IMG/VR virus record: IMGVR_UViG_3300044632_001003
Location: 62,001 to 126,000 of that record
Length of the DNA: 64,000 bases
Reading direction: 5' to 3' (one strand)
Shown here: positions 16-46,131 of the stretch, piece after piece
Position numbering within the stretch: position 1 is the first letter of the stretch
How the letters are laid out: each line of letters begins with the position of its first letter
Notes under the pieces: generated by a model
What the model was told of the DNA's origin: nothing
The model's input: only the letters and a program-made list of their open reading frames with translations
Databases searched by the model: none
Program-made: the position numbers and the translations under genes

Positions 16-74
16 ATTGTAGCAGGTCAGCGGCGGGCAGCGGCTAGCAGCAGGTCCAGTAGGACAACTGCCAC
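16..74 (-). promoter_or_regulatory. early promoter cassette (degenerate palindrome + -10 TACAAT)
   Basis: GGTCCAGT-N6-ACTGCCAC at 53-74, 31 bp from -10 at 16-21. Confidence 0.55.
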
Positions 75-242
75 AACCGCCTTCCAAAAGCCCAGGGCGG
101 TGATTCCAAACCACCCCAGCACCAGCACCAGGAGCCACGCTTTCAGGGCAACGACGCCAGCGACGCCAACGATCAGGATACCTGCCAGAGCCACCATCTG
201 CGGGGTGCTGAGGTCCTCAATCCAGGGGTAACGCTTGCTCAT
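27..242 (-). CDS. small hydrophobic/membrane early protein
   Basis: 71-aa ORF with two hydrophobic stretches; promoter cassette directly upstream (264-322). Confidence 0.7.
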   Translation of the reverse strand: MSKRYPWIEDLSTPQMVALAGILIVGVAGVVALKAWLLVLVLGWFGITALGFWKAVVAVVLLDLLLAAARR

Positions 243-263
243 GGGTGCCTTGCGGTTGAGAGT

Positions 264-322
264 ATTGTAAGGGGTCAGCGGTGCCCTTTGGGGCAGGGAG
301 TGGACAGTGCCTCAGGTGTCCT
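264..322 (-). promoter_or_regulatory. early promoter cassette
   Basis: TGGACAGT-N6-GGTGTCCT 301-322; -10 TACAAT 264-269; 31-bp gap. Confidence 0.7.
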
Positions 323-470
323 CATCCTCCCCCAGAATGAACCCATCAACCCATCCTGCTGTGTATCCGTCATCTTTGGTGAACAGGCGGATCTTAAGAA
401 GTTTGGCGATTGCAAAGGGCAAACCGATCACCAGGGCTCCAGGGATGAGAATGGCAAGCAGTTCGGTCAT
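312..470 (-). CDS. 52-aa membrane-anchored early protein (MTELLAILIPG...), below ORF-track cutoff
   Basis: hand translation; promoter 493-551 upstream; stop codon lies inside the 301-322 palindrome. Confidence 0.65.
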   Translation of the reverse strand: MTELLAILIPGALVIGLPFAIAKLLKIRLFTKDDGYTAGWVDGFILGEDEDT

Positions 471-492
471 GGGGTTCCTTTGAACTGAGAGT

Positions 493-551
493 ATTGTAGC
501 GGGTCAGCGGGCGATCAGGTCGCCTGCAGTGTACAGTGCCTGAGCTGTCAC
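493..551 (-). promoter_or_regulatory. early promoter cassette
   Basis: TGTACAGT-N6-GCTGTCAC 530-551; -10 TACAAT 493-498; 31-bp gap. Confidence 0.7.
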
Positions 552-671
552 ATGGCGGACGGGGCGAATCGGTTCCCATAGTATCCAGAGCAGCAGAGCG
601 GCAACGGTCAGGCGAAGCATGGTAGCACGGTGGAACTCAGGGGAACGGGAACGGGTCAGGGAGCGGATCAT
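504..671 (-). CDS. small hypothetical protein (probable start MIRSLT)
   Basis: 3' part of track ORF 504..758; ATG at 671 overlaps the TGA of the upstream ORF. Confidence 0.55.
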   Translation of the reverse strand: MIRSLTRSRSPEFHRATMLRLTVAALLLWILWEPIRPVRHVTAQALYTAGDLIAR

Positions 672-811
672 GCGATGTGAGCAGGGGAACCACAGGAACG
701 GTAGAATTCTACCATACGTTCCGCCTCTGCCAGGGTGGGGAACCATTGCGACCGCCACTCACAGTGGTTGTAGGGGACCTGGTAGCGGACTTCGTAGCGG
801 GTCAGTGCCAT
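668..811 (-). CDS. 47-aa hypothetical protein (MALTRYEVRYQVPYNHCEWRSQWF...)
   Basis: hand translation; resembles small early ORFs I recall from cyanomyophages. Confidence 0.65.
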   Translation of the reverse strand: MALTRYEVRYQVPYNHCEWRSQWFPTLAEAERMVEFYRSCGSPAHIA

Positions 812-905
812 GGGTCAGTTGAAAGACTTTGGGGTGGCGGGTCCGTGACCTCCCGCCTACGGGGTCAAGGGGTCTGTGGGGTTGCCCCCGCCGTTCCTCC
901 CCTTG
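812..905 (-). ncRNA. candidate structured 5' leader RNA (GNRA hairpin + H-type pseudoknot)
   Basis: AAGGGG/CCCCTT stem enclosing GGGG-GCAA-CCCC; crossing stems TGACC/GGTCA and GGCGGG/CCCGCC. Confidence 0.35.
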
Positions 906-913
906 TTGAACAT

Positions 914-972
914 AGTATGGCACGGCAGAGGGGGCAGGTCTATGGGGTGTGTGCCACATTCTGAACTGTCAC
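914..972 (-). promoter_or_regulatory. early promoter cassette
   Basis: GTGCCACA-N6-ACTGTCAC 951-972; -35 TAGACC, 17 bp, -10 CATACT. Confidence 0.75.
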
Positions 973-1553
973 AGCACCTCTTTGCCGAACTTGCCACACA
1001 GGTAGAATGCCATTCCTTTATCTTTCAGGGTGCAACCTGCAAAGGTGAGAGGAACATAGGCGCCGTTAGTTTTAGATGCTTTGGTGCGAATTTGCAGCAG
1101 TCCGTTAGGACCAGTGATGGTGCTCAGTTGCTCACCAGCATTGAACTTAGCACGAATGGTATCACAAATGTGGTTGTAATCCTCCGCCAGTTCCTGATAG
1201 TGTTCGGGGTGAGTTTCAGGGTTCAGAACCTCAGTGCCCACATAATCGTTGGAGCGGGTGAAACCAACGTAGATGGTTTGAGAGAGTTTCTCACCGACTT
1301 TGCTGTCAGCGAAACTAACACTATCCTCCAGAATCTCAGAGAGGCAATGCTTCAGTTGGGTGACAGCGATAGACTCACCAACCGTGAAGGTCTTCAGTTC
1401 TCCATCCACCAGATCTTTCAGGTTGGAACTGTTAGGAATGCCCAGGGCAGTTTCAATCAGTTGCCCACGGGATCCTTTGTTCTTCCCAGGTTTGGCGAAC
1501 GCAGCGAAGTTAGTTACCTTCAGTTGGGCAGCGACTTGCAGGGTGTTGAGCAT
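969..1553 (-). CDS. mutH: MutH/Sau3AI-family endonuclease
   Basis: motifs NKGSRGQLIE..LG, D..DGELK, LQIRTKAS and AFYL parallel MutH (DKG..G..LE, D..ELK, LQIRPKAA, GFYL); start moved to ATG 1553 downstream of promoter 1576-1633. Confidence 0.7.
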   Translation of the reverse strand: MLNTLQVAAQLKVTNFAAFAKPGKNKGSRGQLIETALGIPNSSNLKDLVDGELKTFTVGESIAVTQLKHCLSEILEDSVSFADSKVGEKLSQTIYVGFTRSNDYVGTEVLNPETHPEHYQELAEDYNHICDTIRAKFNAGEQLSTITGPNGLLQIRTKASKTNGAYVPLTFAGCTLKDKGMAFYLCGKFGKEVL

Positions 1554-1575
1554 CGGGTGCGTTGCTGATGAGATT

Positions 1576-1633
1576 AGTATAGGGCACCAGGGGCACCCCA
1601 CAAGGGGGTCTGTGCCACTTCAACGATTGGCAC
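1576..1633 (-). promoter_or_regulatory. early promoter cassette
   Basis: GTGCCACT-N6-ATTGGCAC 1612-1633; -35 TTGTGG; -10 TATACT. Confidence 0.75.
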
Positions 1634-2519
1634 ACTGGAAGCGACCGCTGTTGAAGTTAGCGTTAGAAAAGACCTCACGATTCACCAGTTTGAACATACC
1701 AAACTGATTCACCAGAACGTAACCCTCAGCGTCGATTCTGTTACCGTACAGATAAGCAGCAGGACCATCATTGCGGCAGAGGAACAGGCAGTCATCTTTG
1801 ATAGACTTCACCAATGCCCACAGACGCAGCAGGTTAGCATCACAATCAAAGTCCTCAGGATTCACCTCTTCACCAGCACGAATGCAGGCATTGATCTGTT
1901 GTTTGATCTTTGCCGCTTCCTTCTCACTCACAAAGGTGGCAGTTTGTGCCATCTGACGGGCGAACTTGCACACCTCTTCAACATCAGCGAACGACTCCTG
2001 ATTGTGCAGGATGTATGCATTCGGTTTCACGAACTTCACCGTTTCGGTATCAGTCCAGATGCTACGGTCAGGGAATGCCTGGGCGTCACGAAGATCGCTC
2101 TCAGCATAATAGCAAGTGTGCGGGGCGATGATAATTTTCTGGGAAACTACCTCACCGAACTTATACGTGATGGTGTTAGGATTGTATTCGGTATCACCAC
2201 CGAACCCAATGAAATCACCCTGATAGATGGTTTCGAAACGCGGCAGATAATCGAAGCAAGCGTGAAGAATGTCTGCTACGTTGCCTTCGTAGTGTTGATC
2301 AATGTCCTCATGATTGTGAGCAATACGAATCTTCTTTTTGTTGAACACTGCCTTGGTTCCTACAAAGAACTCACCGCAAGCAGGGTCAATCCCCCACACG
2401 ATGGCAGGGGCACCGTCGATCTTGACGCTCAGGGCACCAGGGGTCACGAACCAGTCCAGGACGCTCAGGTCGCCCGTGAGGATGGTATCTTCGGGGTGCT
2501 CTTGGTGCTTGTTCTGCAT
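1620..2519 (-). CDS. ligase-like nucleotidyltransferase (KxDG), DUF6267-like
   Basis: SVKIDGAP (motif I), YQGDF (III), AEGYVLV (IV), MFKLVN (V). Confidence 0.6.
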   Translation of the reverse strand: MQNKHQEHPEDTILTGDLSVLDWFVTPGALSVKIDGAPAIVWGIDPACGEFFVGTKAVFNKKKIRIAHNHEDIDQHYEGNVADILHACFDYLPRFETIYQGDFIGFGGDTEYNPNTITYKFGEVVSQKIIIAPHTCYYAESDLRDAQAFPDRSIWTDTETVKFVKPNAYILHNQESFADVEEVCKFARQMAQTATFVSEKEAAKIKQQINACIRAGEEVNPEDFDCDANLLRLWALVKSIKDDCLFLCRNDGPAAYLYGNRIDAEGYVLVNQFGMFKLVNREVFSNANFNSGRFQCANR

Positions 2520-2540
2520 CGGTTCTCTGTTGATGGAATC

Positions 2541-2599
2541 AGTATGGCACGAACCAGGGGGGACCGCAACCCCCCCTGTGCCACTTGTTCAACTGTCAC
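2541..2599 (-). promoter_or_regulatory. early promoter cassette
   Basis: GTGCCACT-N6-ACTGTCAC 2578-2599; -35 TTGCGG inside a G6/C6 hairpin, 17 bp, -10 CATACT. Confidence 0.8.
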
Positions 2600-2792
2600 C
2601 CAGGAGGTCTGGATCCAGCAGGTCGGGATAGTAAGACTCAACCTCTGAAATCAGTTCCTCATCAGTATAACTGGTGAGATTTTCTTCCATCTGGTCACCA
2701 ACAATCTGCAGCAAATCTTTGGTGCTCATGTTATCAAGCAAACGGTCGATGTATGCTTCAACCAGTGCTTCACGATCGAAAGTGTCAGTCAT
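2589..2792 (-). CDS. small acidic hypothetical protein
   Basis: 67-aa track ORF, D/E-rich. Confidence 0.75.
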   Translation of the reverse strand: MTDTFDREALVEAYIDRLLDNMSTKDLLQIVGDQMEENLTSYTDEELISEVESYYPDLLDPDLLGDS

Positions 2793-2796
2793 GGTT

Positions 2797-2994
2797 TCAG
2801 TTCAGAACGTGACGATAATCAATGGATTTGATGCACCAACCAGATGCACAAGTGATCTCTTCAACTAAATCATCTTCATCATCTGCCTCCCAGATTTGAC
2901 CAATGTATTCTGCATTTAGAAGGTCTTTGTCATAAGCAGTCATCTCATCATCGTCATCAGTATCAAACTCAATGTAGAGGATTTGGAACTGCAT
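2797..2994 (-). CDS. small acidic hypothetical protein
   Basis: 65-aa track ORF with DTDDDDE and EADDEDD runs. Confidence 0.75.
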   Translation of the reverse strand: MQFQILYIEFDTDDDDEMTAYDKDLLNAEYIGQIWEADDEDDLVEEITCASGWCIKSIDYRHVLN

Positions 2995-3119
2995 CAGTAA
3001 TCGTAGTTAGAGTTCAGATACTCATTGACATCGAACTTTTCATCTTTGAGTTCAGGAATGTCAAGGTCAAAGATCTCACCAGGAGCATCTTGAATCTCAG
3101 ACCAGAGTTCATCAAACAT
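2994..3119 (-). CDS. 41-aa acidic micro-protein (MFDELWSEIQDAPGEIFDLDIPELKDEKFDVNEYLNSNYDY)
   Basis: hand translation; directly behind promoter 3144-3202. Confidence 0.7.
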   Translation of the reverse strand: MFDELWSEIQDAPGEIFDLDIPELKDEKFDVNEYLNSNYDY

Positions 3120-3143
3120 GGCGTGTCTCTCAGGGACGAATGT

Positions 3144-3202
3144 AATGTATCAGGGTCTGGGGGGCATTGCAACCCCCCTTGTGACACTTACTCAACTGTC
3201 AC
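3144..3202 (-). promoter_or_regulatory. early promoter cassette
   Basis: GTGACACT-N6-ACTGTCAC 3181-3202; -35 TTGCAA, 17 bp, -10 TACATT. Confidence 0.8.
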
Positions 3203-3346
3203 ACTCACCTCTTTGATGTTAAGACCCATCAACTGGTTTGTGACACGATTGCAGACAACTTCGGTGGGGTTCTTTACTCTGGACTTCTCATACCAGAAGG
3301 TAACGCAACCATCGTAAGTTTCGACCCGAACTTTAACTTCAGTCAC
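3188..3346 (-). CDS. 52-aa hypothetical protein (GTG start, MTEVKVRVETYDG...)
   Basis: hand translation; behind promoter 3370-3427; stop codon inside the next palindrome. Confidence 0.6.
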   Translation of the reverse strand: MTEVKVRVETYDGCVTFWYEKSRVKNPTEVVCNRVTNQLMGLNIKEVSVTVE

Positions 3347-3369
3347 GGTTGAATCTCAGGAACGAATGT

Positions 3370-3427
3370 ATAATAACCCACGTGGTGGGGTTATGGTAAA
3401 ACTGTGTGCCACTTCACGAACTGGCAC
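3370..3427 (-). promoter_or_regulatory. early promoter cassette
   Basis: GTGCCACT-N6-ACTGGCAC 3406-3427; 30 bp to -10 TATTAT. Confidence 0.75.
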
Positions 3428-3429
3428 AA

Positions 3430-3815
3430 TTGCTCTTGATATCTGCCCTCTGGGTCTTTAAAGTACTTATACCCTACGGACATCGATACCAAAGGTATCT
3501 ATAAGAATTCATATTTCTAGATATCATTCTCAATAAGAAAGGTCTTATTGAGAATTATAATAAAGCACATTTAGATGGTGTGGGAAGGGGTGAGTGGGGT
3601 GAAGCACATATTCTTGCACATAAGGCGGGCTATGTGTGCCGCGTGGGTATCTAGAACTCACCAGCCGCGATTCTCAATAAGAAACTAGTTATTGAGAATG
3701 AGATCTAGATGTGTATGTGTGTATCTAGATGATGTATGATGTGTGCGTCTCGACGAGATATAATGAATGCGTGTGCGATCTAGTCGAGACCACACACGCA
3801 CGTCTCGACGAGATT
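3430..3815. repeat. non-coding repeat/hairpin block A
   Basis: inverted repeats ATTCTCAATAA..TTATTGAGAAT at 3526-3555 and 3670-3699; CTCGWCGAG-type motifs at 3749, 3780, 3804; several TCTAGA; no credible ORF. Confidence 0.75.
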
Positions 3816-4289
3816 CTACCAGTTCTTATTGAACACGAACCCATCTTCGAAATCAAAATCATAACGAAGATTACAGTTCCAGGTAGCATCCCAATCAACT
3901 ACCACGAACGAAGGTGCATCAAACCCATAGATGTCAGTGGTAAATTCTTCGGCAAATGCTGCCTCAGAATCATAAGGACCCTGATAGGCATCTTCGAAAG
4001 ACTGAAGATCCGCCTCATCATAGAGTTCCAGGAATGCATTCACAGCACCCTTACCATAAGAACTACACAGAGTCTGATACAGTTCCTGATACTCTTCGGA
4101 GATCTCATCCTCCAGAGTATCATTGTTCAGGATACCCTTGACAGTCAGCAACTCAGTGTAGAATTCAGTGTATTTGAGTTTGCCATCACGCTCATACCCA
4201 CAGGCACGAACGATTTCAGACATCTTAGCAGGCGGGTTTTGTGCCTGCATTTCATTCACTTTGTTCAGCAGGGAAGAACCAGTCAGCAT
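3816..4289 (-). CDS. fusion of cyanobacterial AbrB-like N-terminal domain and ArdA-like acidic C-terminal domain
   Basis: N-terminus MLTG..LLNKV..SEIVRACGY....YTEFYTELLTVKG; C-terminus YQGPYDSEAAFAEE...VDWDATW...DFEDGFVF. Confidence 0.6.
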   Translation of the reverse strand: MLTGSSLLNKVNEMQAQNPPAKMSEIVRACGYERDGKLKYTEFYTELLTVKGILNNDTLEDEISEEYQELYQTLCSSYGKGAVNAFLELYDEADLQSFEDAYQGPYDSEAAFAEEFTTDIYGFDAPSFVVVDWDATWNCNLRYDFDFEDGFVFNKNW

Positions 4290-4313
4290 GGTCGGTGTCT
4301 CAGGAACGAATGT

Positions 4314-4372
4314 AATGTAGATCGGATTGGTCAGGAACGCAAGGGGGTGTGTGCCACTTATCAGACTGGCAC
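4314..4372 (-). promoter_or_regulatory. early promoter cassette
   Basis: GTGCCACT-N6-ACTGGCAC 4351-4372; -35 TTGCGT, 17 bp, -10 TACATT. Confidence 0.8.
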
Positions 4373-4558
4373 AAGCCCCATCTCATCAATCATAATATCC
4401 CGCACACTTTCACGGTCGAAACTATCACCACAGAAATCAGCACCTGAATGAATGTATTTAAACGTTGCCTCAATGATATCATCATCAGTGGCACCCATAT
4501 CATAAATGCCACCAGGACCATAGAAGGACTTTACGTAACGAATGAATTCCACCATCAC
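4361..4558 (-). CDS. small acidic hypothetical protein
   Basis: 65-aa track ORF with GDSFDRESVRD motif; ends inside the palindrome. Confidence 0.75.
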   Translation of the reverse strand: MMVEFIRYVKSFYGPGGIYDMGATDDDIIEATFKYIHSGADFCGDSFDRESVRDIMIDEMGLVPV

Positions 4559-4782
4559 TTCACCTCCGCCAGCAGCAGTTTGTGAATGCGGTCTGCTTCC
4601 TCTAAGATATCACCATCCAGACGGTCCCACTCTACCCAATCATAGGCAGAAAGTGCAGTCTCATAAGAACCATCAGGCAGCAGGTTAGCATACATCAGAA
4701 CCCGCTGATTGTTTGCATCCAAAGTGTAAGTGCAATTGTTGAGTTTGGAGATGGCGAAAACCATTGGATTTCTCAGCGACAA
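4555..4782 (-). CDS. hypothetical protein
   Basis: 75-aa track ORF; ATGA overlap with the next gene. Confidence 0.7.
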   Translation of the reverse strand: MSLRNPMVFAISKLNNCTYTLDANNQRVLMYANLLPDGSYETALSAYDWVEWDRLDGDILEEADRIHKLLLAEVK

Positions 4783-4786
4783 ATGA

Positions 4787-4860
4787 ATATTACCCCACCA
4801 GAGGACCCAGTGGCCAGAGGACCCAGTGGGGAATCAGTGTGCCACTACCTCAACTGTCAC
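4787..4860 (-). promoter_or_regulatory. early promoter cassette with a 16-bp tandem duplication in the spacer
   Basis: GTGCCACT-N6-ACTGTCAC 4839-4860; CCAGAGGACCCAGTGG x2 at 4798-4829. Confidence 0.65.
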
Positions 4861-4996
4861 ATGCAACGAACTCTTGGAGATAGTAATCCAATGGCAGCTC
4901 AAGTTCAGCCGCTTTCTGTTCCCAAGCATCCCATTCTTCCTGGGAAGCATCATTCAGAAAATCTTCGAAAGTATAATCAAAAACTGGACCACACAT
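4850..4996 (-). CDS. 48-aa acidic protein ending KAAELELPLDYYLQEFV (paralog of 11367..11573)
   Basis: start moved to MCGPVF, downstream of promoter 5021-5079. Confidence 0.7.
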   Translation of the reverse strand: MCGPVFDYTFEDFLNDASQEEWDAWEQKAAELELPLDYYLQEFVACDS

Positions 4997-5020
4997 TGGA
5001 TTAATTGCGACGACGAAGGT

Positions 5021-5079
5021 AGAATATCCCACCTGGTGGCAGATATCAAGGGGTCTTGTGCCAGTTCTCAAACTGTCAC
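5021..5079 (-). promoter_or_regulatory. early promoter cassette
   Basis: GTGCCAGT-N6-ACTGTCAC 5058-5079; -35 TTGATA, 17 bp, -10 TATTCT. Confidence 0.8.
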
Positions 5080-5080
5080 A

Positions 5081-5191
5081 TTACTCGAACGGGTCGAATT
5101 CTTTTACCCTACAATGAACATCTTCGTTAGGTTCGAGTTGCAATAACTCCCGCCAATCGATGTTATCCAGGTCCAGATCATCATAACACAT
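5081..5191 (-). CDS. 36-aa acidic micro-protein (MCYDDLDLDNIDWRELLQLEPNEDVHCRVKEFDPFE)
   Basis: hand translation. Confidence 0.55.
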   Translation of the reverse strand: MCYDDLDLDNIDWRELLQLEPNEDVHCRVKEFDPFE

Positions 5192-5265
5192 GATATCTAG
5201 TGTAACCTGTACGATACGCTTCTGTGCTAACATGAGGTCTAGATGTGTATGTGTACTAGATTATA

Positions 5266-5418
5266 TCATGCATAATGACGATATGCAAGCGATTCGTAAT
5301 CTTGCCCATCTCGTGCATAATCCTCGTCGAGATCTAGTGCATCCTGTGCATAATACTCGTCGAGATCTTGTCCGTAATCGTTGCTGAATGTATAGTCGAG
5401 ATCGTAGTCGTCGTACAT
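5266..5418 (-). CDS. 50-aa Asp/Tyr-rich micro-protein (MYDDYDLDYTFSNDYGQDLDEYYAQDALDLDEDYARDGQDYESLAYRHYA)
   Basis: hand translation; first ORF downstream of the consensus promoter at 5570-5598. Confidence 0.65.
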   Translation of the reverse strand: MYDDYDLDYTFSNDYGQDLDEYYAQDALDLDEDYARDGQDYESLAYRHYA

Positions 5419-5569
5419 AGCTCGTCGAGATTTGTTGAACGCTTATGAATTGTAGCATAAAACTCGACGAGATTGCAAGCCTTATGATGCACCGTCTCGT
5501 CGAGATTCATGCTAGTATATATGCACTCTCGTCGAGAAATGTTAAGATATGCTTATATTTCTCGACTAG
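5323..5569. repeat. phased array of CTCGWCGAG interrupted palindromes (block B)
   Basis: copies start at 5323, 5356, (5392), 5421, 5463, 5496, 5528, 5561. Confidence 0.8.
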
Positions 5570-5598
5570 ATTCTACCATACCCTTATAAGAATGTCAA
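5570..5598 (-). promoter_or_regulatory. consensus sigma70 promoter
   Basis: TTGACA-17-TAGAAT. Confidence 0.8.
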
Positions 5599-5647
5599 GG
5601 TCTGTGAGCCTTATGTGTGGGTCTGGGGATTTTCGGCGGGGCGTGGC

Positions 5648-5676
5648 TTGACAAACTGCGCGTCTTATGCTATACC
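5648..5676 (+). promoter_or_regulatory. divergent sigma70 promoter
   Basis: TTGACA-17-TATACC with extended TG. Confidence 0.6.
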
Positions 5677-5893
5677 TGCTTAGGTCACAAGACTTAGACC
5701 TATTCTCATCAATTAACTCAATTGATTCTCAATTATTCATTTTTATTGAGAATGTTACAAATCACTGACATATATTTAATTTAATATTAACCTTCCATAC
5801 CTCACCATAATACACAACACCAAATTCATTATACCGTGTTATTAATTATACATACACTGTTATAAATCCACAGTACACACCGTGTTATAAACA

Positions 5894-6727
5894 ATGGCAA
5901 GAGGCATCATTTATCTCATCATCAACAAGCAAACTGGTGAAAAATACGTCGGAAACACCACACTTGCAATGAATAAAGAATGGGCACACCAGATAGACCG
6001 TGCTAAAAGAATGTCCCGAGAACCCTTACACAAGGCATTCAGAGAACATGGTGTCCATAACTTTATGATTAGAGAGTTAGATGAATGCGATGAATTAGAG
6101 TTTAATGAGAAAACAAACTATTGGATAGAGCAATACAAACCTGAATACAATCCTGCCATTAGCGCCATAGAGATTGCTAAGAAGGCAATAGAAGAGTATA
6201 AACCTGCCGAAGGCAGGCCTGCCGAAGGCATAAGTGCCGAAGGCATAAGCGCAAGCGCCGCAAGCGCAGCACTACAAGAACTTGCTAAACCAAAACCAAA
6301 AGAAAAAAGAAAAGTTAATACCTCACACTTAATGCAATGGAATGAGAATACCCGTGGAGATGGTAAGAAGACAGGTCTTAAAATAAGATGCAAGAACTTA
6401 GAAACTGGTGTATGCACTGATTATGAATCAGCCAGAGAAGCAGCAACACAAGTGACAGGCAATCCGAATAACCGTGCAAACATTCTATCTGCTGCCAGGC
6501 ATTACCGCATTGCCTATGGTCATCGTTGGCAGATCTTAGAAGAAAAGGAAAAGAAAAAGGCGGTGTTTGGTGTCGATAAAAAAACGGAGATAATTGGTCC
6601 CCGTTGTGAAAGTATTAATGCTGCTGTTCATTTTTTTGAAGGCACCGATAAAAACGGAATTCTCAAGAGTCTGAAGAATCCAGGGCGTTATAGTTGGAAA
6701 GGTTATTACTGGTTCTATGTACGTTAA
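5894..6727 (+). CDS. GIY-YIG-fold protein with C-terminal NUMOD1-like DNA-binding modules; catalytic Arg and Glu appear replaced
   Basis: GIIY..KYVG N-terminus, NKEW instead of KRW, EKT instead of ERE, YN; two (K/R)xxTG...ES..(E/A)A modules. Confidence 0.7.
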   Translation: MARGIIYLIINKQTGEKYVGNTTLAMNKEWAHQIDRAKRMSREPLHKAFREHGVHNFMIRELDECDELEFNEKTNYWIEQYKPEYNPAISAIEIAKKAIEEYKPAEGRPAEGISAEGISASAASAALQELAKPKPKEKRKVNTSHLMQWNENTRGDGKKTGLKIRCKNLETGVCTDYESAREAATQVTGNPNNRANILSAARHYRIAYGHRWQILEEKEKKKAVFGVDKKTEIIGPRCESINAAVHFFEGTDKNGILKSLKNPGRYSWKGYYWFYVR

Positions 6728-6916
6728 TCAGAGTCCTTTATCTCTTTTCTCTTGATTCGCCGTCTGCTGCAAATGCATAGTCGTATGAAGACGTTGTAGA
6801 TTCGCATAGCGATTGTGCTGACGTGTTATGATTCCACTTTCCTTGGCTTTTGCAGCATCAACCTTTGCCTGTGGTGTTGTGAGAATCTGTTCCATGAACT
6901 GAAAGAACGTCTTCAT
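6728..6916 (-). CDS. small late protein with an MKTF..F..E N-terminus resembling the T4 capsid-targeting sequence
   Basis: MKTFFQFMEQ; late promoter ATAAATA at 6937-6943. Confidence 0.55.
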   Translation of the reverse strand: MKTFFQFMEQILTTPQAKVDAAKAKESGIITRQHNRYANLQRLHTTMHLQQTANQEKRDKGL

Positions 6917-6962
6917 TTATCCTCTGACTTTTTGAGTATTTATGGCGTCGCAAACCTCGATC

Positions 6963-12193: not shown

Positions 12194-12457
12194 TCAGCAA
12201 GCACCATGAAAAGGATTACCAAGTTGAGGCAGGTCGGAGTTGTCACCAGTTTCGACATAACCCAGTGCCAGACGCTCACGAATCGCAAGAGTCTTCTCAA
12301 CACGATTCAGAAACTTCTTGGAGATTTGATCCACACCTTTCCAAGACAGAACCTGCAGGCACCATTCCTGACTAATATCACCATAAGGCGTCTTGACAGG
12401 ATAGTAACCAACCAGCATCGTGCCGTCTGCAGACTGGAGAGTGGGGAAGGTGGTCAT
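12194..12457 (-). CDS. hypothetical early protein
   Basis: 87-aa ORF behind promoter 12482-12540. Confidence 0.75.
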   Translation of the reverse strand: MTTFPTLQSADGTMLVGYYPVKTPYGDISQEWCLQVLSWKGVDQISKKFLNRVEKTLAIRERLALGYVETGDNSDLPQLGNPFHGAC

Positions 12458-12481
12458 TGGGTGTCCCTCGATTACCTTAGT

Positions 12482-12540
12482 ATTATAGGGCAGAGTCAGG
12501 GCAGAGTCAGGGCAGAGTATGCCAGTTCATCAAGTGGACC
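12482..12540 (-). promoter_or_regulatory. early promoter cassette whose spacer is an 11-bp tandem repeat x3
   Basis: ATGCCAGT-N6-AGTGGACC 12519-12540; GGGCAGAGTCA x3; -10 TATAAT. Confidence 0.7.
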
Positions 12541-15302: not shown

Positions 15303-15500
15303 TCATTCTTCGGGGTAGAGTTTCCAACCATCAGGGCGGATGCCCATTTCTTCACAACGAACCTCATAAACAATCCGCTTCAGAAGTTGAAGAGGCATTT
15401 CATTCTCAATCTTTTTCTGAATGGTGCGGCGCAGTTGGGCGTCCTGGGTGGTGTCGGTGACCATTGCGGTTCCCTTGATTACCTTGTAATTATAGGGCAC
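15303..15500 (-). CDS. hypothetical early protein (probable start MVTDTT)
   Basis: behind promoter 15489-15546. Confidence 0.65.
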   Translation of the reverse strand: MPYNYKVIKGTAMVTDTTQDAQLRRTIQKKIENEMPLQLLKRIVYEVRCEEMGIRPDGWKLYPEE

Positions 15501-15546
15501 TCATCAGGCGATTCGGGAAGAACTGTGCCACTTGATGATCTGTCCA
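15489..15546 (-). promoter_or_regulatory. early promoter cassette
   Basis: GTGCCACT-N6-TCTGTCCA 15525-15546; 30 bp to TATAAT. Confidence 0.65.
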
Positions 15547-16861: not shown

Positions 16862-16919
16862 ATTATAGGGCATCCCAGAGGGGTCTGGGAGGTCAGTATG
16901 CCAGTTCTGAATCTGGCAC
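16862..16919 (-). promoter_or_regulatory. early promoter cassette
   Basis: ATGCCAGT-N6-TCTGGCAC 16898-16919; TCCCAGA/TCTGGGA hairpin in the spacer; TATAAT. Confidence 0.75.
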
Positions 16920-17483: not shown

Positions 17484-18293
17484 TTAGTATAATGCCTCTA
17501 GCAGCGGATTCTGGGGTTCCTGTGCCACTTCCTCAACTGGCATAGCATCCTCTATGCGTTGCTTAGCAATCTCATAATATTCTTGTTCAAATTCCATCCC
17601 AATAAACTTTCGATTTAATTTAACTGCAGCAACACCAGTAGAACCAGAACCCATACAGTTATCAAGAACAATCTCACCTTCATTAGAATACGTTTTGATT
17701 AACCATTCCATTAGTGGAACAGGTTTCTGTGTGGGATGCACCTGTTGTTGAGCACTAAAGTCTCTGGAGATATTAAGAACAGACTTGGGATATCTTACAC
17801 CTTCATTACTGAAGGATTTACGTGGTTTCATACCATAACCATGGTCATTCTTGCGACCAACGTATCCCTCTGGATTCTTACTTGTTCTTGAGTACGGTTC
17901 TCCTTTTTCCATCTGTGGGTTGTACGTACCACCTGTTTCCCTGTAAAAAATTAGAACGTTCTCGTGAGTCTTCATTGGTCTGTACTTGGCAAGTCCAGGC
18001 GATCCACATTTGTTCTTGTTCCATACTAATTCGTACCTGAACCATTCTAGTTTTGAGCAGATAAGTTGTGCTGAAAAGGGTTGAGAACCAAATAGACATA
18101 TCACACCTTTAGGTTTGATGATACGCCCATATTGCTGCCACATTTGGTTAAAATCTAAAACTTCATCCCACTTGATGGAAGTAGTCCCATAAGGTGGGTC
18201 GCAGCAGATGAAATCAATAGAATTGTCTGGAATCTCTTTCATGAGTTCCAGACAGTCACCTAGTTGTAAGTCAAAGGGCATCATAACCTTCAT
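17484..18293 (-). CDS. beta-class N6A/N4C DNA methyltransferase
   Basis: CDPPYG near N-terminus; HPTQKPV; VLDNCMGSGSTG near C-terminus. Confidence 0.92.
   Translation of the reverse strand: MKVMMPFDLQLGDCLELMKEIPDNSIDFICCDPPYGTTSIKWDEVLDFNQMWQQYGRIIKPKGVICLFGSQPFSAQLICSKLEWFRYELVWNKNKCGSPGLAKYRPMKTHENVLIFYRETGGTYNPQMEKGEPYSRTSKNPEGYVGRKNDHGYGMKPRKSFSNEGVRYPKSVLNISRDFSAQQQVHPTQKPVPLMEWLIKTYSNEGEIVLDNCMGSGSTGVAAVKLNRKFIGMEFEQEYYEIAKQRIEDAMPVEEVAQEPQNPLLEALY
17486..17543 (-). promoter_or_regulatory. early promoter cassette embedded in the MTase 3' end
   Basis: GTGCCACT-TCCTCA-ACTGGCAT 17522-17543; 30 bp to TATACT. Confidence 0.75.
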
Positions 18294-18873: not shown

Positions 18874-18894
18874 CAAATTGATTAAACTATTAGT

Positions 18895-18952
18895 ATTATA
18901 CGTCTTTTTCTGTCTCTTGGATATCTTCTTGTACCACTTCCTCAACTGGCAC
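18895..18952 (-). promoter_or_regulatory. early promoter cassette embedded in the 3' end of 18896..19387
   Basis: GTACCACT-TCCTCA-ACTGGCAC 18931-18952; 30 bp to TATAAT. Confidence 0.75.
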
Positions 18953-31196: not shown

Positions 31197-31254
31197 ATTA
31201 TAAAGCATCAGGAGGCGTCTTCAACGTCCTCTGTGCCAGTTTCGGAAGTGTCCT
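31197..31254 (-). promoter_or_regulatory. early promoter cassette
   Basis: GTGCCAGT-N6-AGTGTCCT 31233-31254; 30 bp to TATAAT. Confidence 0.7.
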
Positions 31255-36921: not shown

Positions 36922-36977
36922 ATTATAGCAGAAAACCGCCCCTGGTGCGACCCATGGGACAGTTCTCAAAGTGTCCT
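36922..36977 (-). promoter_or_regulatory. early promoter cassette for the helicase
   Basis: GGGACAGT-N6-AGTGTCCT 36956-36977; TATAAT 36922-36927; a further TTGACA-17-TAGACT at 37007-37035. Confidence 0.7.
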
Positions 36978-39639: not shown

Positions 39640-39655
39640 CTTATATGGTTTTTAG

Positions 39656-42600: not shown

Positions 42601-44938
42601 TTACGAAAGTGTTATCAGTTTTCTCACCCAGAATTCCAATACCATAAGTTGCAAATGCATTGTAAATTGGGTTGTTATGCGTACTGTGGATATACCAGTT
42701 TGAGCGGAAAGAGTCCCACTGTACTGGATGTCCTACATCTCCAGATGCTTTGTCAGAAACTCTACTCTGAATCTTGAGTTTTGATCCACCATATACTGTA
42801 ACTTCTACATTATTATCAGCATTTGCTTTTGATGAAGCTACTTTAATTGTTGTGCTGGACGAACGAATCGCATAATAAACTCTATGCGAAACAATATTTT
42901 CTGGGAGATCTCCATCATCACTTGTAATGTAAATACTTTCACCAGTTAAGATGTCATGTGCTCCGATAGTGAAAACATTACTAGTAGGACCTGAGGTTAC
43001 TCTATATTCCTTATAAGCTACGTTTGTTCCTAAAGCAGTGGTTCCAATGCCAATAACATTATTAACCATGCAGATATTAGCACCAAATGTGCCAATACCA
43101 CTTCCTAAATTAACATAAAGTTTGTCATCTCTTCTAGCACCAACTCGATATCCTTGAGTAAGAATAGGTGGGGAATCATCTTGGTTATTAAATCCATAAA
43201 GATAAAGATGACTTGAGATTCCAACAGAAGTTGTAAGTCCAACGTCTAGGGATTGCCAATCAATGTCTGCCTCATCAGATTTAACTGCTCTTGGACCAAC
43301 AATTGCAGAAATATAAGCCTTATTATCCTTGTCAAATGCTTCTGCTCTAAATCCATCAGAAGTTAGAGAGAATTGACCAAAGTTTGAGTTTGAGTTGGTA
43401 ATCGATGCGTCACCACCAGACTCGGTATTAAAATGGTTAGTAAATCCAATAGCAAACACAGATACAATCTGAATGATTGAATCATTCGACATTTTAATAT
43501 GATTGGTTTCCCAACCTGTTCTATAGACTGCGCTTGAATCTAAGTGATAGACTTTATCCTTATCTAAAGAAGAAGCACCTGCCGATAATTCTGCTCCCGT
43601 CTTTTTAGTAATAGTTATTGATTCGTAGTTTCTATCTACTTCATCATATTTTACAAATGCCCTATCATCTTTTTGTAGAGAAACACCTGTAAATTGTGCA
43701 ACAACCATTGAACGGAAACCTGATGCTTTGCTACCATCAGCGTACATTCCATTCATGCCATAAACTGATCTTAGCGAACAGTTGAAGACATAAGGAGAAG
43801 CACCAGAAACAGTATCCGTTTCAATCGTAACTGTTGCACCACTAACATCTGGAAGTGTTAGTAGATTTGGTTGAACATATGGGAGAACATATGTAAAGGT
43901 ATTTGCATTAATTACACTTTGTACCTTTGTAGAAATATTGTAATCATTTACTCCATCAGCAAGACCAACACCCTTAATCTTAATTGGTGTTCCTTCATTG
44001 AACTTATGTTCTAAAACAGTAGTTACTGTAATGATAGGACCAGCAGTTCCACCACTACCAGATTCAATTCTTGCAATCGTTAATGTATCAGCAGCGAACG
44101 CACCAACAATCTCCCATTCTGCTCTTTGCTTAGCGAATCCGCCTGCGTCATCTGGATATTTTTCTGGAATATCTCTTACCGAATTGAATGCATTTGACAA
44201 TTTGCTATAATACATGTCAAGATCGGTTAAATCATAACCGACCACTTCATTTACACCATCAGCATACTCAAAGCAAGTTAGTTTATGGTGAGAAAATGTT
44301 GGGACTGAACGATTATTTTCAGAAAAATCTATATTATCGGTATAAACAGTTCCAGTCTCACTACCATCAAAAATTGTAAATTGCCAAAGATAACAAGTAC
44401 CAGTTAGCCTAAAAATAGCAGATCGAGGAACATTTGAATCTGTGGGATTTGGTACATACTTTGGTCTTATTTTTGTTTTTCTTAGGTCTAAACCAACTAA
44501 TGATGTACCTCTTGGTATAATAACTCCACCATTAACGCTGTTAAATTTGTAGAGAATATTTCCAACTTGGTTAAGGTCAAAGTTAGAATCTAAATTGAGT
44601 GCAATCTGTTCGGATGGAGTTGAGATTGTACCCGAAGGTGACTTAACTTTTACACCAAGTGCGGGGTCATTATAAATCGCAAATCCTGGTCTATTATCAA
44701 TTAAATGCTCACCTGGAAAAAGTAAAATTGTAGTTTTTTCAATCGCATCATTATTATTACCTTTTAAGTATGAGAATCTTGCAGACTCTAGTAACGCCCT
44801 TTGTATTGTTTTAAATGGCTTAGCAAGAGAATTTCCTTGATTCTCGATGCTATCCGTTGCTTCAAGATCGTTTGGATTTACATATAGAATACGACCTTCA
44901 GTATTTTTAATAAAATTATCTAATTTATTAAGAGGCAT
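39656..44938 (-). CDS. large virion/tail fibre protein with an N-terminal beta-helix-type start and a C-terminal intramolecular chaperone (peptidase S74)
   Basis: YVNPND...PFKTIQRAL; C-terminal SDQRLKDNI...GVIAQEI...VRYEKIIPLLVEAVKEL; late promoter 44971-44977. Confidence 0.85.
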   Translation of the reverse strand: MPLNKLDNFIKNTEGRILYVNPNDLEATDSIENQGNSLAKPFKTIQRALLESARFSYLKGNNNDAIEKTTILLFPGEHLIDNRPGFAIYNDPALGVKVKSPSGTISTPSEQIALNLDSNFDLNQVGNILYKFNSVNGGVIIPRGTSLVGLDLRKTKIRPKYVPNPTDSNVPRSAIFRLTGTCYLWQFTIFDGSETGTVYTDNIDFSENNRSVPTFSHHKLTCFEYADGVNEVVGYDLTDLDMYYSKLSNAFNSVRDIPEKYPDDAGGFAKQRAEWEIVGAFAADTLTIARIESGSGGTAGPIITVTTVLEHKFNEGTPIKIKGVGLADGVNDYNISTKVQSVINANTFTYVLPYVQPNLLTLPDVSGATVTIETDTVSGASPYVFNCSLRSVYGMNGMYADGSKASGFRSMVVAQFTGVSLQKDDRAFVKYDEVDRNYESITITKKTGAELSAGASSLDKDKVYHLDSSAVYRTGWETNHIKMSNDSIIQIVSVFAIGFTNHFNTESGGDASITNSNSNFGQFSLTSDGFRAEAFDKDNKAYISAIVGPRAVKSDEADIDWQSLDVGLTTSVGISSHLYLYGFNNQDDSPPILTQGYRVGARRDDKLYVNLGSGIGTFGANICMVNNVIGIGTTALGTNVAYKEYRVTSGPTSNVFTIGAHDILTGESIYITSDDGDLPENIVSHRVYYAIRSSSTTIKVASSKANADNNVEVTVYGGSKLKIQSRVSDKASGDVGHPVQWDSFRSNWYIHSTHNNPIYNAFATYGIGILGEKTDNTFVKRFDDSRSLDEKLYKIRIVVPKDAENAKAPAETFIVQESSSTGYRNDGDPGRVSIGATDYDYHRNPRFISTCITGTTGIVTVTTELPHNLQVGNLVNIKSVRSSTNTGGLSNEGYNGKFAITGIVDDHTFRYSTVDVTGVTHSPGTFTSNTATRNTNLPRFERSDVNKNYFVYRSEIIRPYIKDVQDGIYHAYLLNANNSVPEEFTNLKYAQNVTDLYPQLDKDNVDDNPFAANTYAKRSPIGDVVTDDLKKSITKESLDLFTQDFGIGLPIVAVSTSFASVNSGTATITLGREHGFAGVTTYSSFSGGSGYNAGTHYNVKLFNNGTSTWDGATAKVIVSSGGTITDVKILSRGSGYTDGEELDFDTSVIGVGVGAGLTIASTGISTNLGDVVQVTGIGTTGDGYYRIASIPSKTQISVAITAADPQIHTGHYIINLGPSVPVTTVAGPVLGITTFTSSFAHNLTAGSKFKFIDSNNNNLGDYIVNEKVGVNTFTVATSTTLSSAKYILKHGLSSNDAVSDSTTENIASRGTFFYDNEKFFLGATIESGSSITVSGSTICGLSTLTRFPLGSYIQVDNEIMRISGSEFTGSSNNQLVVIRGVFGTSKETHNTGSIARKIRPLAIELRRPSIIRASGHTFEYLGFGPGNYSTGLPQVQVRSLTEKESFLAQSQKRSAGVVVYTGMNSDGDFYIGNKKSSSATGQEITFDVPVPTVTGQESGRLSVIFDEVLIKERLRVEGGKSGTVLSQFDGPVTFNKEVRIRNSASITGIVKITNVTESTSKTTGALVVSGGLGVDGKSTLDDIVTINTGIIPDVDKGAYIGTVGGAFEEAYIDGIRIGVAGTTTIDTRGGNLVINASIGSSVSISTNTTISGELNVTGDITAFYTSDQRLKDNITPIDDPLAKVLSISGNTYTWNEKSGKEGNDVGVIAQEILEVLPEAVTTRDNGYLAVRYEKIIPLLVEAVKELSARVGDLEQKLSDK

Positions 44939-44973
44939 TGGATTATTACGACCAGAATATTTCTATGTTCTAT

Positions 44974-45279
44974 TTAGCTGGTCAAATCCTCCTCATCATG
45001 TTCATATTCTAAATCATCTGGTAAGTCTTCTGGGTTTTCTAAATCCACTGCGAAGAAGCAAGGATGTACCTCTTCATCAATTAGATAGAAAGAGTTCCTG
45101 TACAAGTCTTCTGGCTCAAAAGACCTTTCTTTATCTGCTAATCTACAAAGATCTTGGTCATATAAATGTCCGTCTGGAAGTTCGTCGAATGTAAATGGAA
45201 CGTGATTAATAAAGTACATCTTCACGATCATACTGCCATTATTGTACCAGCAGTATGCGTGATCGATACGATAAGACAT
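44974..45279 (-). CDS. hypothetical protein
   Basis: 101-aa track ORF. Confidence 0.75.
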   Translation of the reverse strand: MSYRIDHAYCWYNNGSMIVKMYFINHVPFTFDELPDGHLYDQDLCRLADKERSFEPEDLYRNSFYLIDEEVHPCFFAVDLENPEDLPDDLEYEHDEEDLTS

Positions 45280-45310
45280 TGGGTTTTCCCATATCTTATA
45301 TTTATTTTTA

Positions 45311-45383
45311 TACCCGTGAGTGGATTCGAACCACCGCTTGGAACATTTTAAGTGTTCTGCCTCTTCCGCTGGGCTACACGGGC
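45311..45383 (-). tRNA. trnL: tRNA-Leu(UAA) with a short (5-nt) variable loop, no intron, no encoded CCA
   Basis: GCCCGTG/CACGGGT acceptor, GAACA-CTTAAAA-TGTTC anticodon arm, GGTGG-TTCGAAT-CCACT T arm. Confidence 0.85.
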
Positions 45384-45482
45384 GTGTATTTTTTGTTTGA
45401 TGCCGTGTGTTTGTGAGACTAAATCAAAACCGTTTGATAGATGCCCCACTGGATTCTATCATAAGTTTTGAACCACGACAAG

Positions 45483-45555
45483 TGCAGGTTGCGAGGATTG
45501 AACTCGCCTTCGCCGCTTTATGAGAACGGTCCATTCACCAGATTGGTAAACCTGC
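45483..45555 (-). tRNA. tRNA with CAU anticodon (Met or Ile2)
   Basis: GCAGGTT/AACCTGC acceptor, CCGTT-CTCATAA-AGCGG, GCGAG-TTCAATC-CTCGC. Confidence 0.85.
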
Positions 45556-45559
45556 ACGA

Positions 45560-45647
45560 TACGAGTGCCTGGATTCGAACCAGGTCAAAGCCGCTAATCT
45601 GGCGGAAAGAGTTTATAAGACTCCTCTGACTACCAAGTCTCACTCGC
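45560..45647 (-). tRNA. trnI: atypical tRNA with UAU anticodon (Ile), minimal D-arm and long variable arm
   Basis: GCGAGTG/CACTCGT acceptor, GACT-TGGT-AGTC, GGAGT-CTTATAA-ACTCT, CCGC/GCGG variable stem, CCTGG-TTCGAAT-CCAGG. Confidence 0.75.
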
Positions 45648-45655
45648 TTCTGCGT

Positions 45656-45829
45656 TTATGATGCCTCGTTGTTTAACTCAGTGTGTATTCGTATGAGGTC
45701 ATCATCCACAGGTATCATAACCGCTGCTTGCCCATTCTCGTTAATTATACCTAAATGCTCTCCATTTTCAACTCGTTCCATCAGTTCATCAAACCTCTCT
45801 TGAAACTCTTCCACAGTGAAAACTTCCAT
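45656..45829 (-). CDS. 57-aa Phd/YefM antitoxin-like protein
   Basis: hand translation MEVFTVEEFQERFDELMERVENGEHLGIINENGQAAVMIP... Confidence 0.6.
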   Translation of the reverse strand: MEVFTVEEFQERFDELMERVENGEHLGIINENGQAAVMIPVDDDLIRIHTELNNEAS

Positions 45830-45843
45830 TTTTGTGTTTTTAT

Positions 45844-46053
45844 TTAGTTGTTATCCTGACCATAAATTGCCAGGTCAGCATACTCAATCTGCTCAGGGTC
45901 AAGTTGAGCGGTGACAACTTCCAACACGTTCATAAACTCTTGAACAGTCTCACACTCCACCAGACGCTCACTACCCTGGTCGCTGAGAAGAAGGAAGGTG
46001 CGGGTGCAGACATCAATCACAATGCCTTGAACGGTCTCTTGTGCAATGCTCAT
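45844..46053 (-). CDS. hypothetical early protein
   Basis: 69-aa track ORF behind promoter 46079-46131. Confidence 0.75.
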   Translation of the reverse strand: MSIAQETVQGIVIDVCTRTFLLLSDQGSERLVECETVQEFMNVLEVVTAQLDPEQIEYADLAIYGQDNN

Positions 46054-46078
46054 TTGGTGTTCCGTTGATTACCCCCAT

Positions 46079-46131
46079 ATTATAGGGCAGATGGGGGCGG
46101 GTGTCAAGTGTGCCAGTTTAAAAAGTGGTTA
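46079..46131 (-). promoter_or_regulatory. TTGACA-17-TATAAT promoter with an adjacent palindrome
   Basis: GTGCCAGT-N6-AGTGGTTA 46110-46131. Confidence 0.75.

Follow-up and report, generated by a model that had tools for sequence, protein, structure and literature searches.

A palindromic operator upstream of putative early promoters in a T4-like cyanophage, with the host regulator PlmA as its likely binder

In the 64,000-nucleotide stretch analyzed here (hereafter designated the window; positions 62,001 to 126,000 of IMG/VR record IMGVR_UViG_3300044632_001003), nineteen copies of a 22-base inverted repeat are located upstream of host-type promoters, all of which point at minus-strand genes (Table 1). 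The window belongs to the 205-kb genome of a T4-like cyanomyovirus, as judged from its tail, baseplate, and fibre PHROGs, the presence of psbA and psbD, and its nearest relatives S-SRM01, S-SKS1, and P-SSM2. The -10 box (TAnnnT type) lies 30 or 31 nt from the palindrome at 16 of the 19 sites, an ATG follows 21–25 nt after the box at 16 of 17 sites measured, and a TTG-type -35 box lies about 8 nt after the palindrome in many sites. Of the 17 sites in the window with a downstream ORF, the start codon lies 21–25 nt after the -10 box at 16 and 13 nt after it at 36956, and site 18931 has only a TTG at 18 nt.

Table 1 Operators, -10 boxes, and downstream genes in the window (window coordinates; spacer, distance in nt from palindrome to -10 hexamer).
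Operator	Strand	Features of the operator	-10 box	Spacer	Downstream gene
53..74	-	degenerate	TACAAT, 16-21	31	gene starts left of the window
301..322	-	degenerate; 6 mismatches to the N4 consensus	TACAAT, 264-269	31	ORF 27-242 (71 aa)
530..551	-	degenerate; 5 mismatches to the N4 consensus	TACAAT, 493-498	31	ORF 312-470 (52 aa)
951..972	-		CATACT, 914-919	31	unclear
1612..1633	-		TATACT, 1576-1581	30	ORF 969-1553 (194 aa, phrog_15364)
2578..2599	-	0 mismatches	CATACT, 2541-2546	31	ORF 1620-2519 (DUF6267)
3181..3202	-	0 mismatches	TACATT, 3144-3149	31	ORF 2994-3119 (41 aa)
3406..3427	-	0 mismatches	TATTAT, 3370-3375	30	ORF 3188-3346 (52 aa)
4351..4372	-		TACATT, 4314-4319	31	ORF 3816-4289 (anti-restriction PHROG, ArdA-like)
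4839..4860	-	spacer of 46 nt caused by a 16-bp tandem duplication	TAATAT, 4787-4792	46	ORF 4555-4764
5058..5079	-	0 mismatches, fully symmetric	TATTCT, 5021-5026	31	ORF 4850-4996
12519..12540	-	spacer nearly identical to that of the Syn9 site at 44775	TATAAT, 12482-12487	31	ORF 12194-12457
15525..15546	-		TATAAT, 15489-15494	30	ORF 15303-15464
16898..16919	-		TATAAT, 16862-16867	30	ORF 16409-16840 (DUF7717)
17522..17543	-		TATACT, 17486-17491	30	ORF 17059-17460 (phrog_1987)
18931..18952	-		TATAAT, 18895-18900	30	endonuclease 18271-18876, then DNA methylase 17484-18293
31233..31254	-		TATAAT, 31197-31202	30	ORF 30918-31175
36956..36977	-	weaker	TATAAT, 36922-36927	28	helicase 35673-36908
46110..46131	-	only the promoter-proximal half-site conserved; perfect TTGACA-17-TATAAT promoter; a twin of this variant at genome 188412	TATAAT, 46079-46084	25	ORF 45844-46053 (DUF7294)

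The first-pass annotation had reported these nineteen palindromes and their distance from the -10 boxes, and this observation was confirmed. A search of the window with its consensus (two half-sites separated by N6), allowing up to 3 mismatches, gave 18 matches against 1.71 ± 1.44 expected, and none of 100 shuffled sequences reached 18. Seventeen of the 19 listed positions were recovered in this way; sites 301 and 530 are more degenerate but have the same geometry, whereas an extra hit at 54060 has no convincing promoter and is probably due to chance. A scan of the whole genome added sites just left of the window (genome 60129, 61039, 61295, and 61540) and at genome 1934, 163971, 188412, and 202350. 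The spacer, however, needed correction. Positions 9 and 14 are conserved (T and A), so that the element consists of two 9-bp half-sites separated by N4, with a conserved T before and a conserved A after, that is, T-GTGMCAGTT-N4-AASTGKCAC-A.

The comparison with CRP/FNR sites, which had been drawn from the N6 spacing although the half-site was seen to match neither TGTGA nor the GTA of NtcA, does not hold; the consensus of 108 oriented sites fits neither TGTGA-N6-TCACA nor GTA-N8-TAC. A role of the palindrome in RNA or as a DNA hairpin, serving as a terminator or processing site for the upstream gene, was also considered, because it lies at or just after the end of the preceding ORF and several copies can fold (down to -11.6 kcal/mol). 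However, no U-run follows it, the folding energies range from -1.3 to -11.6, and the paired positions do not co-vary, position 4/19 being non-complementary in 51 of the 108 sites and position 7/16 being mostly G with G or C with C. What is conserved is the sequence and the distance to the -10 box, and we rejected this reading as very unlikely.

The same architecture is present in Syn9, S-SRM01, S-SKS1, P-SSM2, and more than 100 IMG/VR contigs. Among 192 exact sites in 120 IMG/VR loci, TAnnnT falls at offset 30 (107 times) or 31 (79 times), against about 7 at other offsets. With up to 2 mismatches, 15 sites were found in S-SRM01, 10 in S-SKS1, and 12 in P-SSM2, in contrast to none in T4 and 1, at chance level, in the pelagiphage HTVC008M of the same family, indicating that the motif tracks the host phylum and not the phage lineage. 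In Syn9, the palindrome precedes gp68, gp78, and gp79, bearing out the statement in the first-pass annotation that a palindromic element in early promoters was reported for this phage. It is therefore the general cyanomyovirus promoter element, presumably the one that Doron et al. (2016) reportedly described for Syn9 early genes; the papers citing that study gave no description of the motif.

The same promoter type is used by bacteria. In Nostocales, a Microcystaceae MAG, and a Synechococcales MAG, the palindrome lies 30 nt before a -10 box and about 40 nt before Rfam Cyano-1 (Yfr2-type) RNAs, and each such genome has 1–8 sites and none in the reversed-pattern control. In marine picocyanobacteria, the operator of yfr2 is CGRE1. 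Two forms of CGRE1 deduced from its published description in words (GTTG-N3-GTGNCAC-N3-CAAC and a variant) gave only background, and its form was instead read from the promoters of Cyano-1 hits. The true Cyanobiaceae yfr2 promoters carry AACTGNCAC-N-GTGNCAGTT, which fits the published description and lies 54–56 nt before the Yfr2 5' motif. These are the 9-bp half-sites of the phage operator in swapped order, and the GTGNCAGTT half ends 43–44 nt before the -10 box, the same distance as that of the distal half-site of the phage operator (4+9+30/31), in agreement with the published position of the proximal end of CGRE1, about 55–57 nt before the transcription start.

CGRE1 is bound by the GntR-family activator PlmA (PMM1637 in Prochlorococcus), as shown experimentally (Lambrecht et al. 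2018, PMC6191309). PMM1637 was pulled down on the yfr2 promoter, shifts CGRE1 promoters, loses binding with the R50A change, and raises reporter output, although its activation in the E. coli reporter is reported only as higher than that of the R50A mutant. The DNA-reading helix of PlmA is identical in picocyanobacteria and Nostocales; searches of NCBIfam and the PDB returned no PlmA model and no PlmA structure, respectively. Moreover, full-length PlmA-like proteins were found in Acidobacteriota, where such a gene is adjacent in 13 of 120 motif loci, about 10 of these having the site 10–60 nt after the end of the gene. Among 81 sampled genomes, the 4 with the exact motif are all among the 7 with the gene (hypergeometric probability about 2e-5). 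Rfam found nothing at the acidobacterial sites, and their target proteins are mostly unannotated.

The inverted form was essentially not found in 61 Cyanobiaceae genomes, and PlmA of the likely hosts is therefore only known to bind the other arrangement. The absence of hits in several small genomes classed as cyanobacterial and first taken as picocyanobacteria carries no weight, because they lacked psbA (G008, G012, and G029 are listed among the genomes without a match), and an absence of hits in small genomes in a separate scan says little for the same reason. The family of another genome, G058, comprised only 4 genomes. Conversely, the phage has no everted, CGRE1-type site with up to 2 mismatches. 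A rigid dimer could not read both the everted half-sites with N1 and the inverted ones with N4, and the anti-correlation of positions 7 and 16 is not explained by a simple symmetric dimer. In addition, yfr2 induction is stress-linked, whereas early phage promoters should fire at once.

These results leave two further candidates for the binder, both of which we regard as unlikely. First, a phage protein, carried in the virion or made early, may bind the palindrome and either activate these promoters or shut them off at the early-to-middle switch, as many phages regulate their early promoters themselves and the inverted N4 arrangement is common in cyanomyoviruses but nearly absent from Cyanobiaceae genomes. 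No GntR-domain ORF was found in the phage, in a search restricted to that family among DNA-binding folds. However, the identical motif and spacing occur in promoters of phage-free bacterial genomes of two phyla, where they track a host GntR gene, and the near absence from the pelagiphage indicates that the motif follows the host. Second, the element may be read by RNA polymerase itself, as an UP-element-like contact, or by a different host regulator sharing the site with PlmA, since its position (-64 to -43) is where alpha-subunit C-terminal domains and many class I activators sit, and PlmA is not known to bind this arrangement directly. However, the sequence is G+C-rich and palindromic, unlike UP elements, its half-site equals that of a site for which PlmA was the protein recovered, it is linked by both adjacency and co-occurrence to PlmA-like genes in Acidobacteriota, and the half-site and spacing do not fit CRP or NtcA.

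Collectively, the most probable explanation, held with moderate confidence, is that each site is the upstream operator of a host-RNA-polymerase promoter with a weak TTG-type -35 box, a TAnnnT -10 box, and a short leader, and that these promoters mimic a host PlmA-activated promoter, in effect copying that of the yfr2 sRNA. If transcription starts about 7 nt after the -10 box, the operator is centred near -53.5 or -54.5. In this view, the half-site GTGMCAGTT is the recognition unit of PlmA, and PlmA already present in the cell would bind the injected phage DNA and help the host polymerase start as an upstream (class-I-like) activator, so that the phage would express anti-restriction, restriction-modification, helicase, and many small genes at once without any factor of its own. 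The motif, its spacing, its conservation in cyanomyoviruses, its presence in host-type promoters, the identity of its half-site with that of CGRE1, and the link to PlmA-like genes were established here by sequence analysis, whereas the binding of PlmA to this arrangement, its activating effect, and the early expression are inferred, the last from gene content and from what is reported for Syn9. The interpretation in the first-pass annotation is supported, with the corrections given above, as regards a protein operator at a fixed position upstream of host-sigma-type promoters; the same layout occurs in bacterial promoters, one class of which is experimentally activator-dependent. Its statement that no binder had been identified can now be narrowed to a strong candidate, host PlmA. 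Of the genes that it placed in the regulon, the ArdA-like, restriction endonuclease (here followed by a methylase), and helicase genes were examined and do lie behind such promoters.

Cyanomyovirus early genes reportedly use a novel regulatory element rather than the T4 scheme, and we found no paper that names its binder. Tying the element to PlmA makes this question directly testable at the bench, and would link the first minutes of infection of Synechococcus and Prochlorococcus to host nutrient and light sensing. PlmA is reported to associate with PII-PipX complexes and to be reduced by thioredoxin. It is about as likely as not that T4-like cyanophages start their infection program through PlmA, in which case early phage transcription would be gated by the nitrogen/carbon, energy, and redox (light) state of the host, and that PlmA is not a cyanobacteria-only family, the acidobacterial homologues with the same operator controlling leaderless genes for small secreted proteins. 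The link would also give PlmA, whose regulon was called unknown in 2020, a defined operator outside the marine lineages and extend the family to Acidobacteriota.

Among known systems, the closest is the early-gene regulatory element of T4-like cyanophages reported for Syn9 and P-TIM40 (Doron et al. 2016, ISME J). Syn9 itself carries the same palindrome, the same 30–31-nt spacing to a -10 box, and the same short leader before small genes in its 44–53 kb region, and the phage analyzed here is a new one, with only 51–61% protein identity to the nearest isolates. CGRE1 shares the 9-bp half-site, the distance of one half-site from the -10 box, and a location upstream of -35, and has a demonstrated activator role, but is everted with a 1-bp centre (a 21–22-nt element), the two dyads being about 11.5 bp apart. 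The yfr2 (Rfam Cyano-1) promoters of Nostocales and other non-marine cyanobacteria are identical in palindrome arrangement and spacing to the -10 box, but drive an sRNA rather than protein genes, and we found no regulator assigned to them experimentally. Class I CRP-type activation likewise involves a dimer site upstream of a weak -35 box at a fixed helical phase, but differs in half-site and spacing (TGTGA-N6-TCACA against 9-N4-9) and in its centre, which lies at -61.5 and not near -53.5. Finally, the PeSL cassettes (early promoter plus stem-loop) reported for T4-type coliphages (Arbiol et al. 2010) are likewise repeated promoter modules between small, variable early genes, and near-identical promoter spacers are shared between distant phages (window 12519 against Syn9 44775); the stem-loop there is reportedly a terminator, whereas the palindrome here has no U-run and shows conservation of sequence rather than of structure.

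The window (bases 62001-126000) lies on a single-contig IMG/VR virus record of 205,009 bp, rated 96% complete, whose tail, baseplate and fibre proteins hit T4-type PHROGs. Its nearest isolates are Synechococcus phages S-SRM01 and S-SKS1 and Prochlorococcus phage P-SSM2, at 51-61% identity for one tail protein, and it also carries psbA and psbD; it is therefore a T4-like cyanomyovirus with no close sequenced relative. When the window was searched with the consensus of the first-pass annotation, allowing up to 3 mismatches, we found 18 matches against 1.7 expected, and none of 100 shuffles reached 18, so that the repeated palindrome noted there is real. Read on the minus strand, every site shows the same order, namely the palindrome, in many sites a G- or C-run followed by a TTG-type -35 box about 8 nt further on, a TAnnnT or CATACT -10 box, and a start codon, which lies 21-25 nt after the -10 box at 16 of the 17 sites with a measured ORF. 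The spacer between the palindrome and the -10 box is 30 or 31 nt in 16 of 19 sites, and the three exceptions have simple explanations: a 28-nt spacer at 36956, a perfect -35/-10 promoter with only the proximal half-site at 46110, and, at 4839, a 16-bp direct duplication (ccactgggtcctctgg, twice) that moves the operator to 46 nt from the -10 box and makes this promoter a natural spacing mutant.

The sites continue to the left of the window and form a dense cluster, the densest run of operators coinciding with an unusually G+C-rich island (0.49-0.55, against about 0.38 for the genome) made of very small ORFs. Genes behind these promoters include an anti-restriction (ArdA-like) protein, an endonuclease followed by a DNA methylase, a helicase, several DUF proteins and many ORFs of 40-90 codons. 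The endonuclease (phrog_3978, with a weak ThaI-like hit) and the N6/N4 DNA methylase form an apparent restriction-modification pair under one operator-promoter, and the pair is 76% identical in DNA to a methylase/endonuclease pair of phage ACG-2014a. Outside the window, a weaker operator with a -10 box 29 nt away lies about 200 bp upstream of the phage psbA start.

Coordinates of operator-promoter features and associated loci (L001, the Syn9 sequence; L270 and L328, extracted loci)
Sequence	Position	Feature
Window	4793-4838	spacer with the 16-bp duplication, promoter at 4839
Window	12457-12540	operator at 12519 and its promoter spacer
Window	1-6000 (genome 60-67 kb)	dense operator cluster in the G+C-rich island
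Window	951, 3406, 5058, 15525, 17522	operators with TAnnnT at 30/31 nt on both sides
Window	17484-18876	endonuclease and DNA methylase pair
Phage genome, outside the window (L270)	163971-163992	weaker operator upstream of psbA
Syn9 (L001)	44775, 47205, 48559, 51001, 51212, 52997	operators with the same architecture
Syn9 (L001)	44775-44860	operator and spacer resembling window 12519
Syn9 (L001)	44804, 48608	annotated start codons of gp61 and gp73
Cyanobiaceae genome (L328, G336:C1:113800-114500)	243-264	inverted-type site

The motif was refined with 108 oriented exact sites from other phage contigs, which gave the consensus T-GTGMCAGTT-N4-AASTGKCAC-A. Positions 9 and 14 are conserved, and hence the spacer is N4, not the N6 proposed in the first-pass annotation. 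An RNA or cruciform signal was also considered, but positions that would pair in a hairpin do not co-vary: position 4/19 is non-complementary in 51 of 108 sites, and position 7/16 is G,G (56), C,C (36), G,C (15) and C,G (1). Moreover, no U-run is present, and folding energies vary from -1.3 to -11.6 kcal/mol. What is conserved is sequence at a fixed distance from a promoter, a pattern that points to a protein site rather than to an RNA or cruciform signal; the earlier interpretation of the element as an operator is thus supported, apart from its spacer. The anti-correlation of positions 7 and 16 (G,G or C,C in 92 of 108 sites, the symmetric G,C in only 15) was accompanied by a preference for C at the fourth position of the proximal half, whereas the distal half takes A or C, so that the site is systematically asymmetric and occurs in both orientations relative to the promoter. 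In addition, 35 of 180 exact sites have a TAnnnT at 30/31 nt on both sides, more than our rough chance estimate of about 9, as do five sites in the window, and divergent or antisense promoters are possible.

Syn9 has the same architecture at six sites, where the predicted start codons coincide with the annotated gp68, gp78 and gp79. The annotated start codons of gp61 and gp73, in contrast, fall inside the predicted promoter, and in-frame ATGs 21-24 nt after the -10 box look like the real starts. An exact-pattern scan of IMG/VR returned at least 120 loci, with 192 sites, in which TAnnnT falls at offset 30 (107 times) or 31 (79 times), against about 7 at other offsets, and 104 of these 120 loci share ORFs with this phage or with Syn9. 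With up to 2 mismatches, 15 sites were counted in S-SRM01, 10 in S-SKS1 and 12 in P-SSM2, in clusters, whereas T4 has none and the pelagiphage HTVC008M, classified in the same family, has one weak hit; the reversed control was zero everywhere. The element is thus general to cyanobacteria-infecting T4-like phages and follows the host phylum. The spacer between operator and -10 box at window 12519 is almost the same as that of the Syn9 site at 44775, although the phages are distant, and leaders also fall into families, one starting aaggtaatca and one starting acattcgttcctgaga.

We next scanned one genome per prokaryote species for the 24-bp form, obtaining at least 120 loci, dominated by Acidobacteriota and including about 15 cyanobacterial loci. 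In these loci TAnnnT again peaks 29-31 nt after the 24-mer (81 occurrences, against about 3 at other offsets). In Anabaena, Nodularia, Umezakia, a Microcystaceae MAG and a Synechococcales MAG, the transcript that follows is Rfam Cyano-1, the Yfr2 sRNA family. Genomes with the motif have 1-8 sites and none in the control. Of 301 Cyanobacteriota in a partial sample, 74 have a site, although this denominator is misleading because only about a third of that phylum sample is photosynthetic. Two short MAG contigs, one from a Nanopelagicaceae bin (3.3 kb; L230) and one from a Pirellulales bin (2.5 kb; L234), carry two phage-type operator-promoter units each, with the cyanophage spacer style, and look like cyanophage fragments binned into unrelated genomes.

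Lambrecht et al. 2018 (PMC6191309) showed that the yfr2 promoters of Prochlorococcus and marine Synechococcus carry a palindrome, CGRE1, 21-22 nt long and starting 55-57 nt upstream of the transcription start; that the GntR-family protein PMM1637, the PlmA orthologue, is pulled down on it; that PMM1637 shifts promoters containing it and loses binding with the R50A change; and that PMM1637 raises reporter output in E. coli. We located true Cyanobiaceae through the phage PsbA (94% identity) and found their Cyano-1 genes, the promoters of which carry AACTGNCAC-N-GTGNCAGTT. This form is exact in about 10 of 61 genomes and always lies 54-56 nt before the Yfr2 5' motif; with its flanks it fits the published description, and one copy sits only 13 nt before the RNA, matching the exception reported in that paper for MIT9313. 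The inverted phage form is practically not found in the 61 Cyanobiaceae genomes, which are a partial sample, and the everted form is not found in the phage or in Syn9. The only inverted-type site detected in those 61 genomes precedes a 12-codon ORF with a phage-like leader (aaaggtaatggagag) and is followed by no Rfam RNA; it may be a promoter cassette of phage origin.

Independent support came from Acidobacteriota. The roughly 330-aa GntR proteins of cyanobacteria match only the N-terminal GntR domain of known families, and one genome has this as its only GntR protein. Full-length homologues were found in Terracidiphilus and Pyrinomonadaceae, at 24-31% identity over 240-307 residues, with E-values from small local BLAST databases that are only indicative. 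In 13 of the 120 motif loci such a gene is adjacent; in about 10 of these the palindrome begins 10-60 nt after the stop codon of the gene, and in one it lies just before the start. In an even, though partial, sample of 81 Acidobacteriota, the exact motif occurs in 4 genomes and the PlmA-like gene in 7, and all 4 motif genomes are among the 7 (probability of about 2e-5); in one of them the site lies 28 nt after the gene. The reading helix is identical between picocyanobacterial and Nostocales PlmA, and an H-x-N-T-(I/V)-S signature is kept in the acidobacterial proteins. In the Acidobacteriota loci (among L123-L242, for example L154, L160, L188 and L228), the palindrome drives genes whose ATG is 5-7 nt after the -10 box, and which are therefore leaderless; they encode small proteins with signal-peptide-like N-termini, plus Lcl_C and FG-GAP proteins, constituting an undescribed small regulon tied to a PlmA-like regulator. 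The phage itself encodes no GntR domain.

Most likely, host PlmA present before infection binds the operator at about -64 to -43 of the injected DNA and helps the host RNA polymerase holoenzyme at promoters whose -35 box is weak, which would give immediate expression of counter-defence and take-over genes. Our analysis establishes the motif with its geometry and conservation, its use in bacterial promoters, its half-site and positional identity with an experimentally defined PlmA operator, and the genomic linkage of the motif to PlmA-like genes. Binding of PlmA to the inverted N4 arrangement, activation and early timing, on the other hand, are inferred from sequence alone. The main difficulty is the swapped order of the half-sites, which requires either flexible DNA-binding heads or a different oligomeric mode, and the anti-symmetric preference at positions 7 and 16 is also unexplained. 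In the library searched, we found no paper connecting the phage element to PlmA, CGRE1 or yfr2; only two papers mention CGRE1, and none of relevance pairs PlmA with cyanophage. A 2020 review calls the PlmA regulon unknown and the family cyanobacteria-specific. The hypothesis on the binder and the acidobacterial homologues are the parts worth following up.

As a cyanophage promoter motif, the element is, we believe, already known, and this window adds another phage that carries it. Doron et al. 2016 reportedly described a 'novel regulatory element' that controls early genes of Syn9 and P-TIM40 and is conserved in T4-like cyanophages; its identity with the present motif is inferred from the Syn9 sequence. 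The sharing of a spacer between distant phages and the families of leaders suggest that promoter cassettes move or recombine, as PeSLs do in T4-type coliphages. CGRE1 is built from the same two 9-bp half-sites as the phage element, in swapped order. In both, the GTGNCAGTT half ends 43-44 nt before the -10 box, and the two dyads are about 11.5 bp apart, roughly one helical turn.
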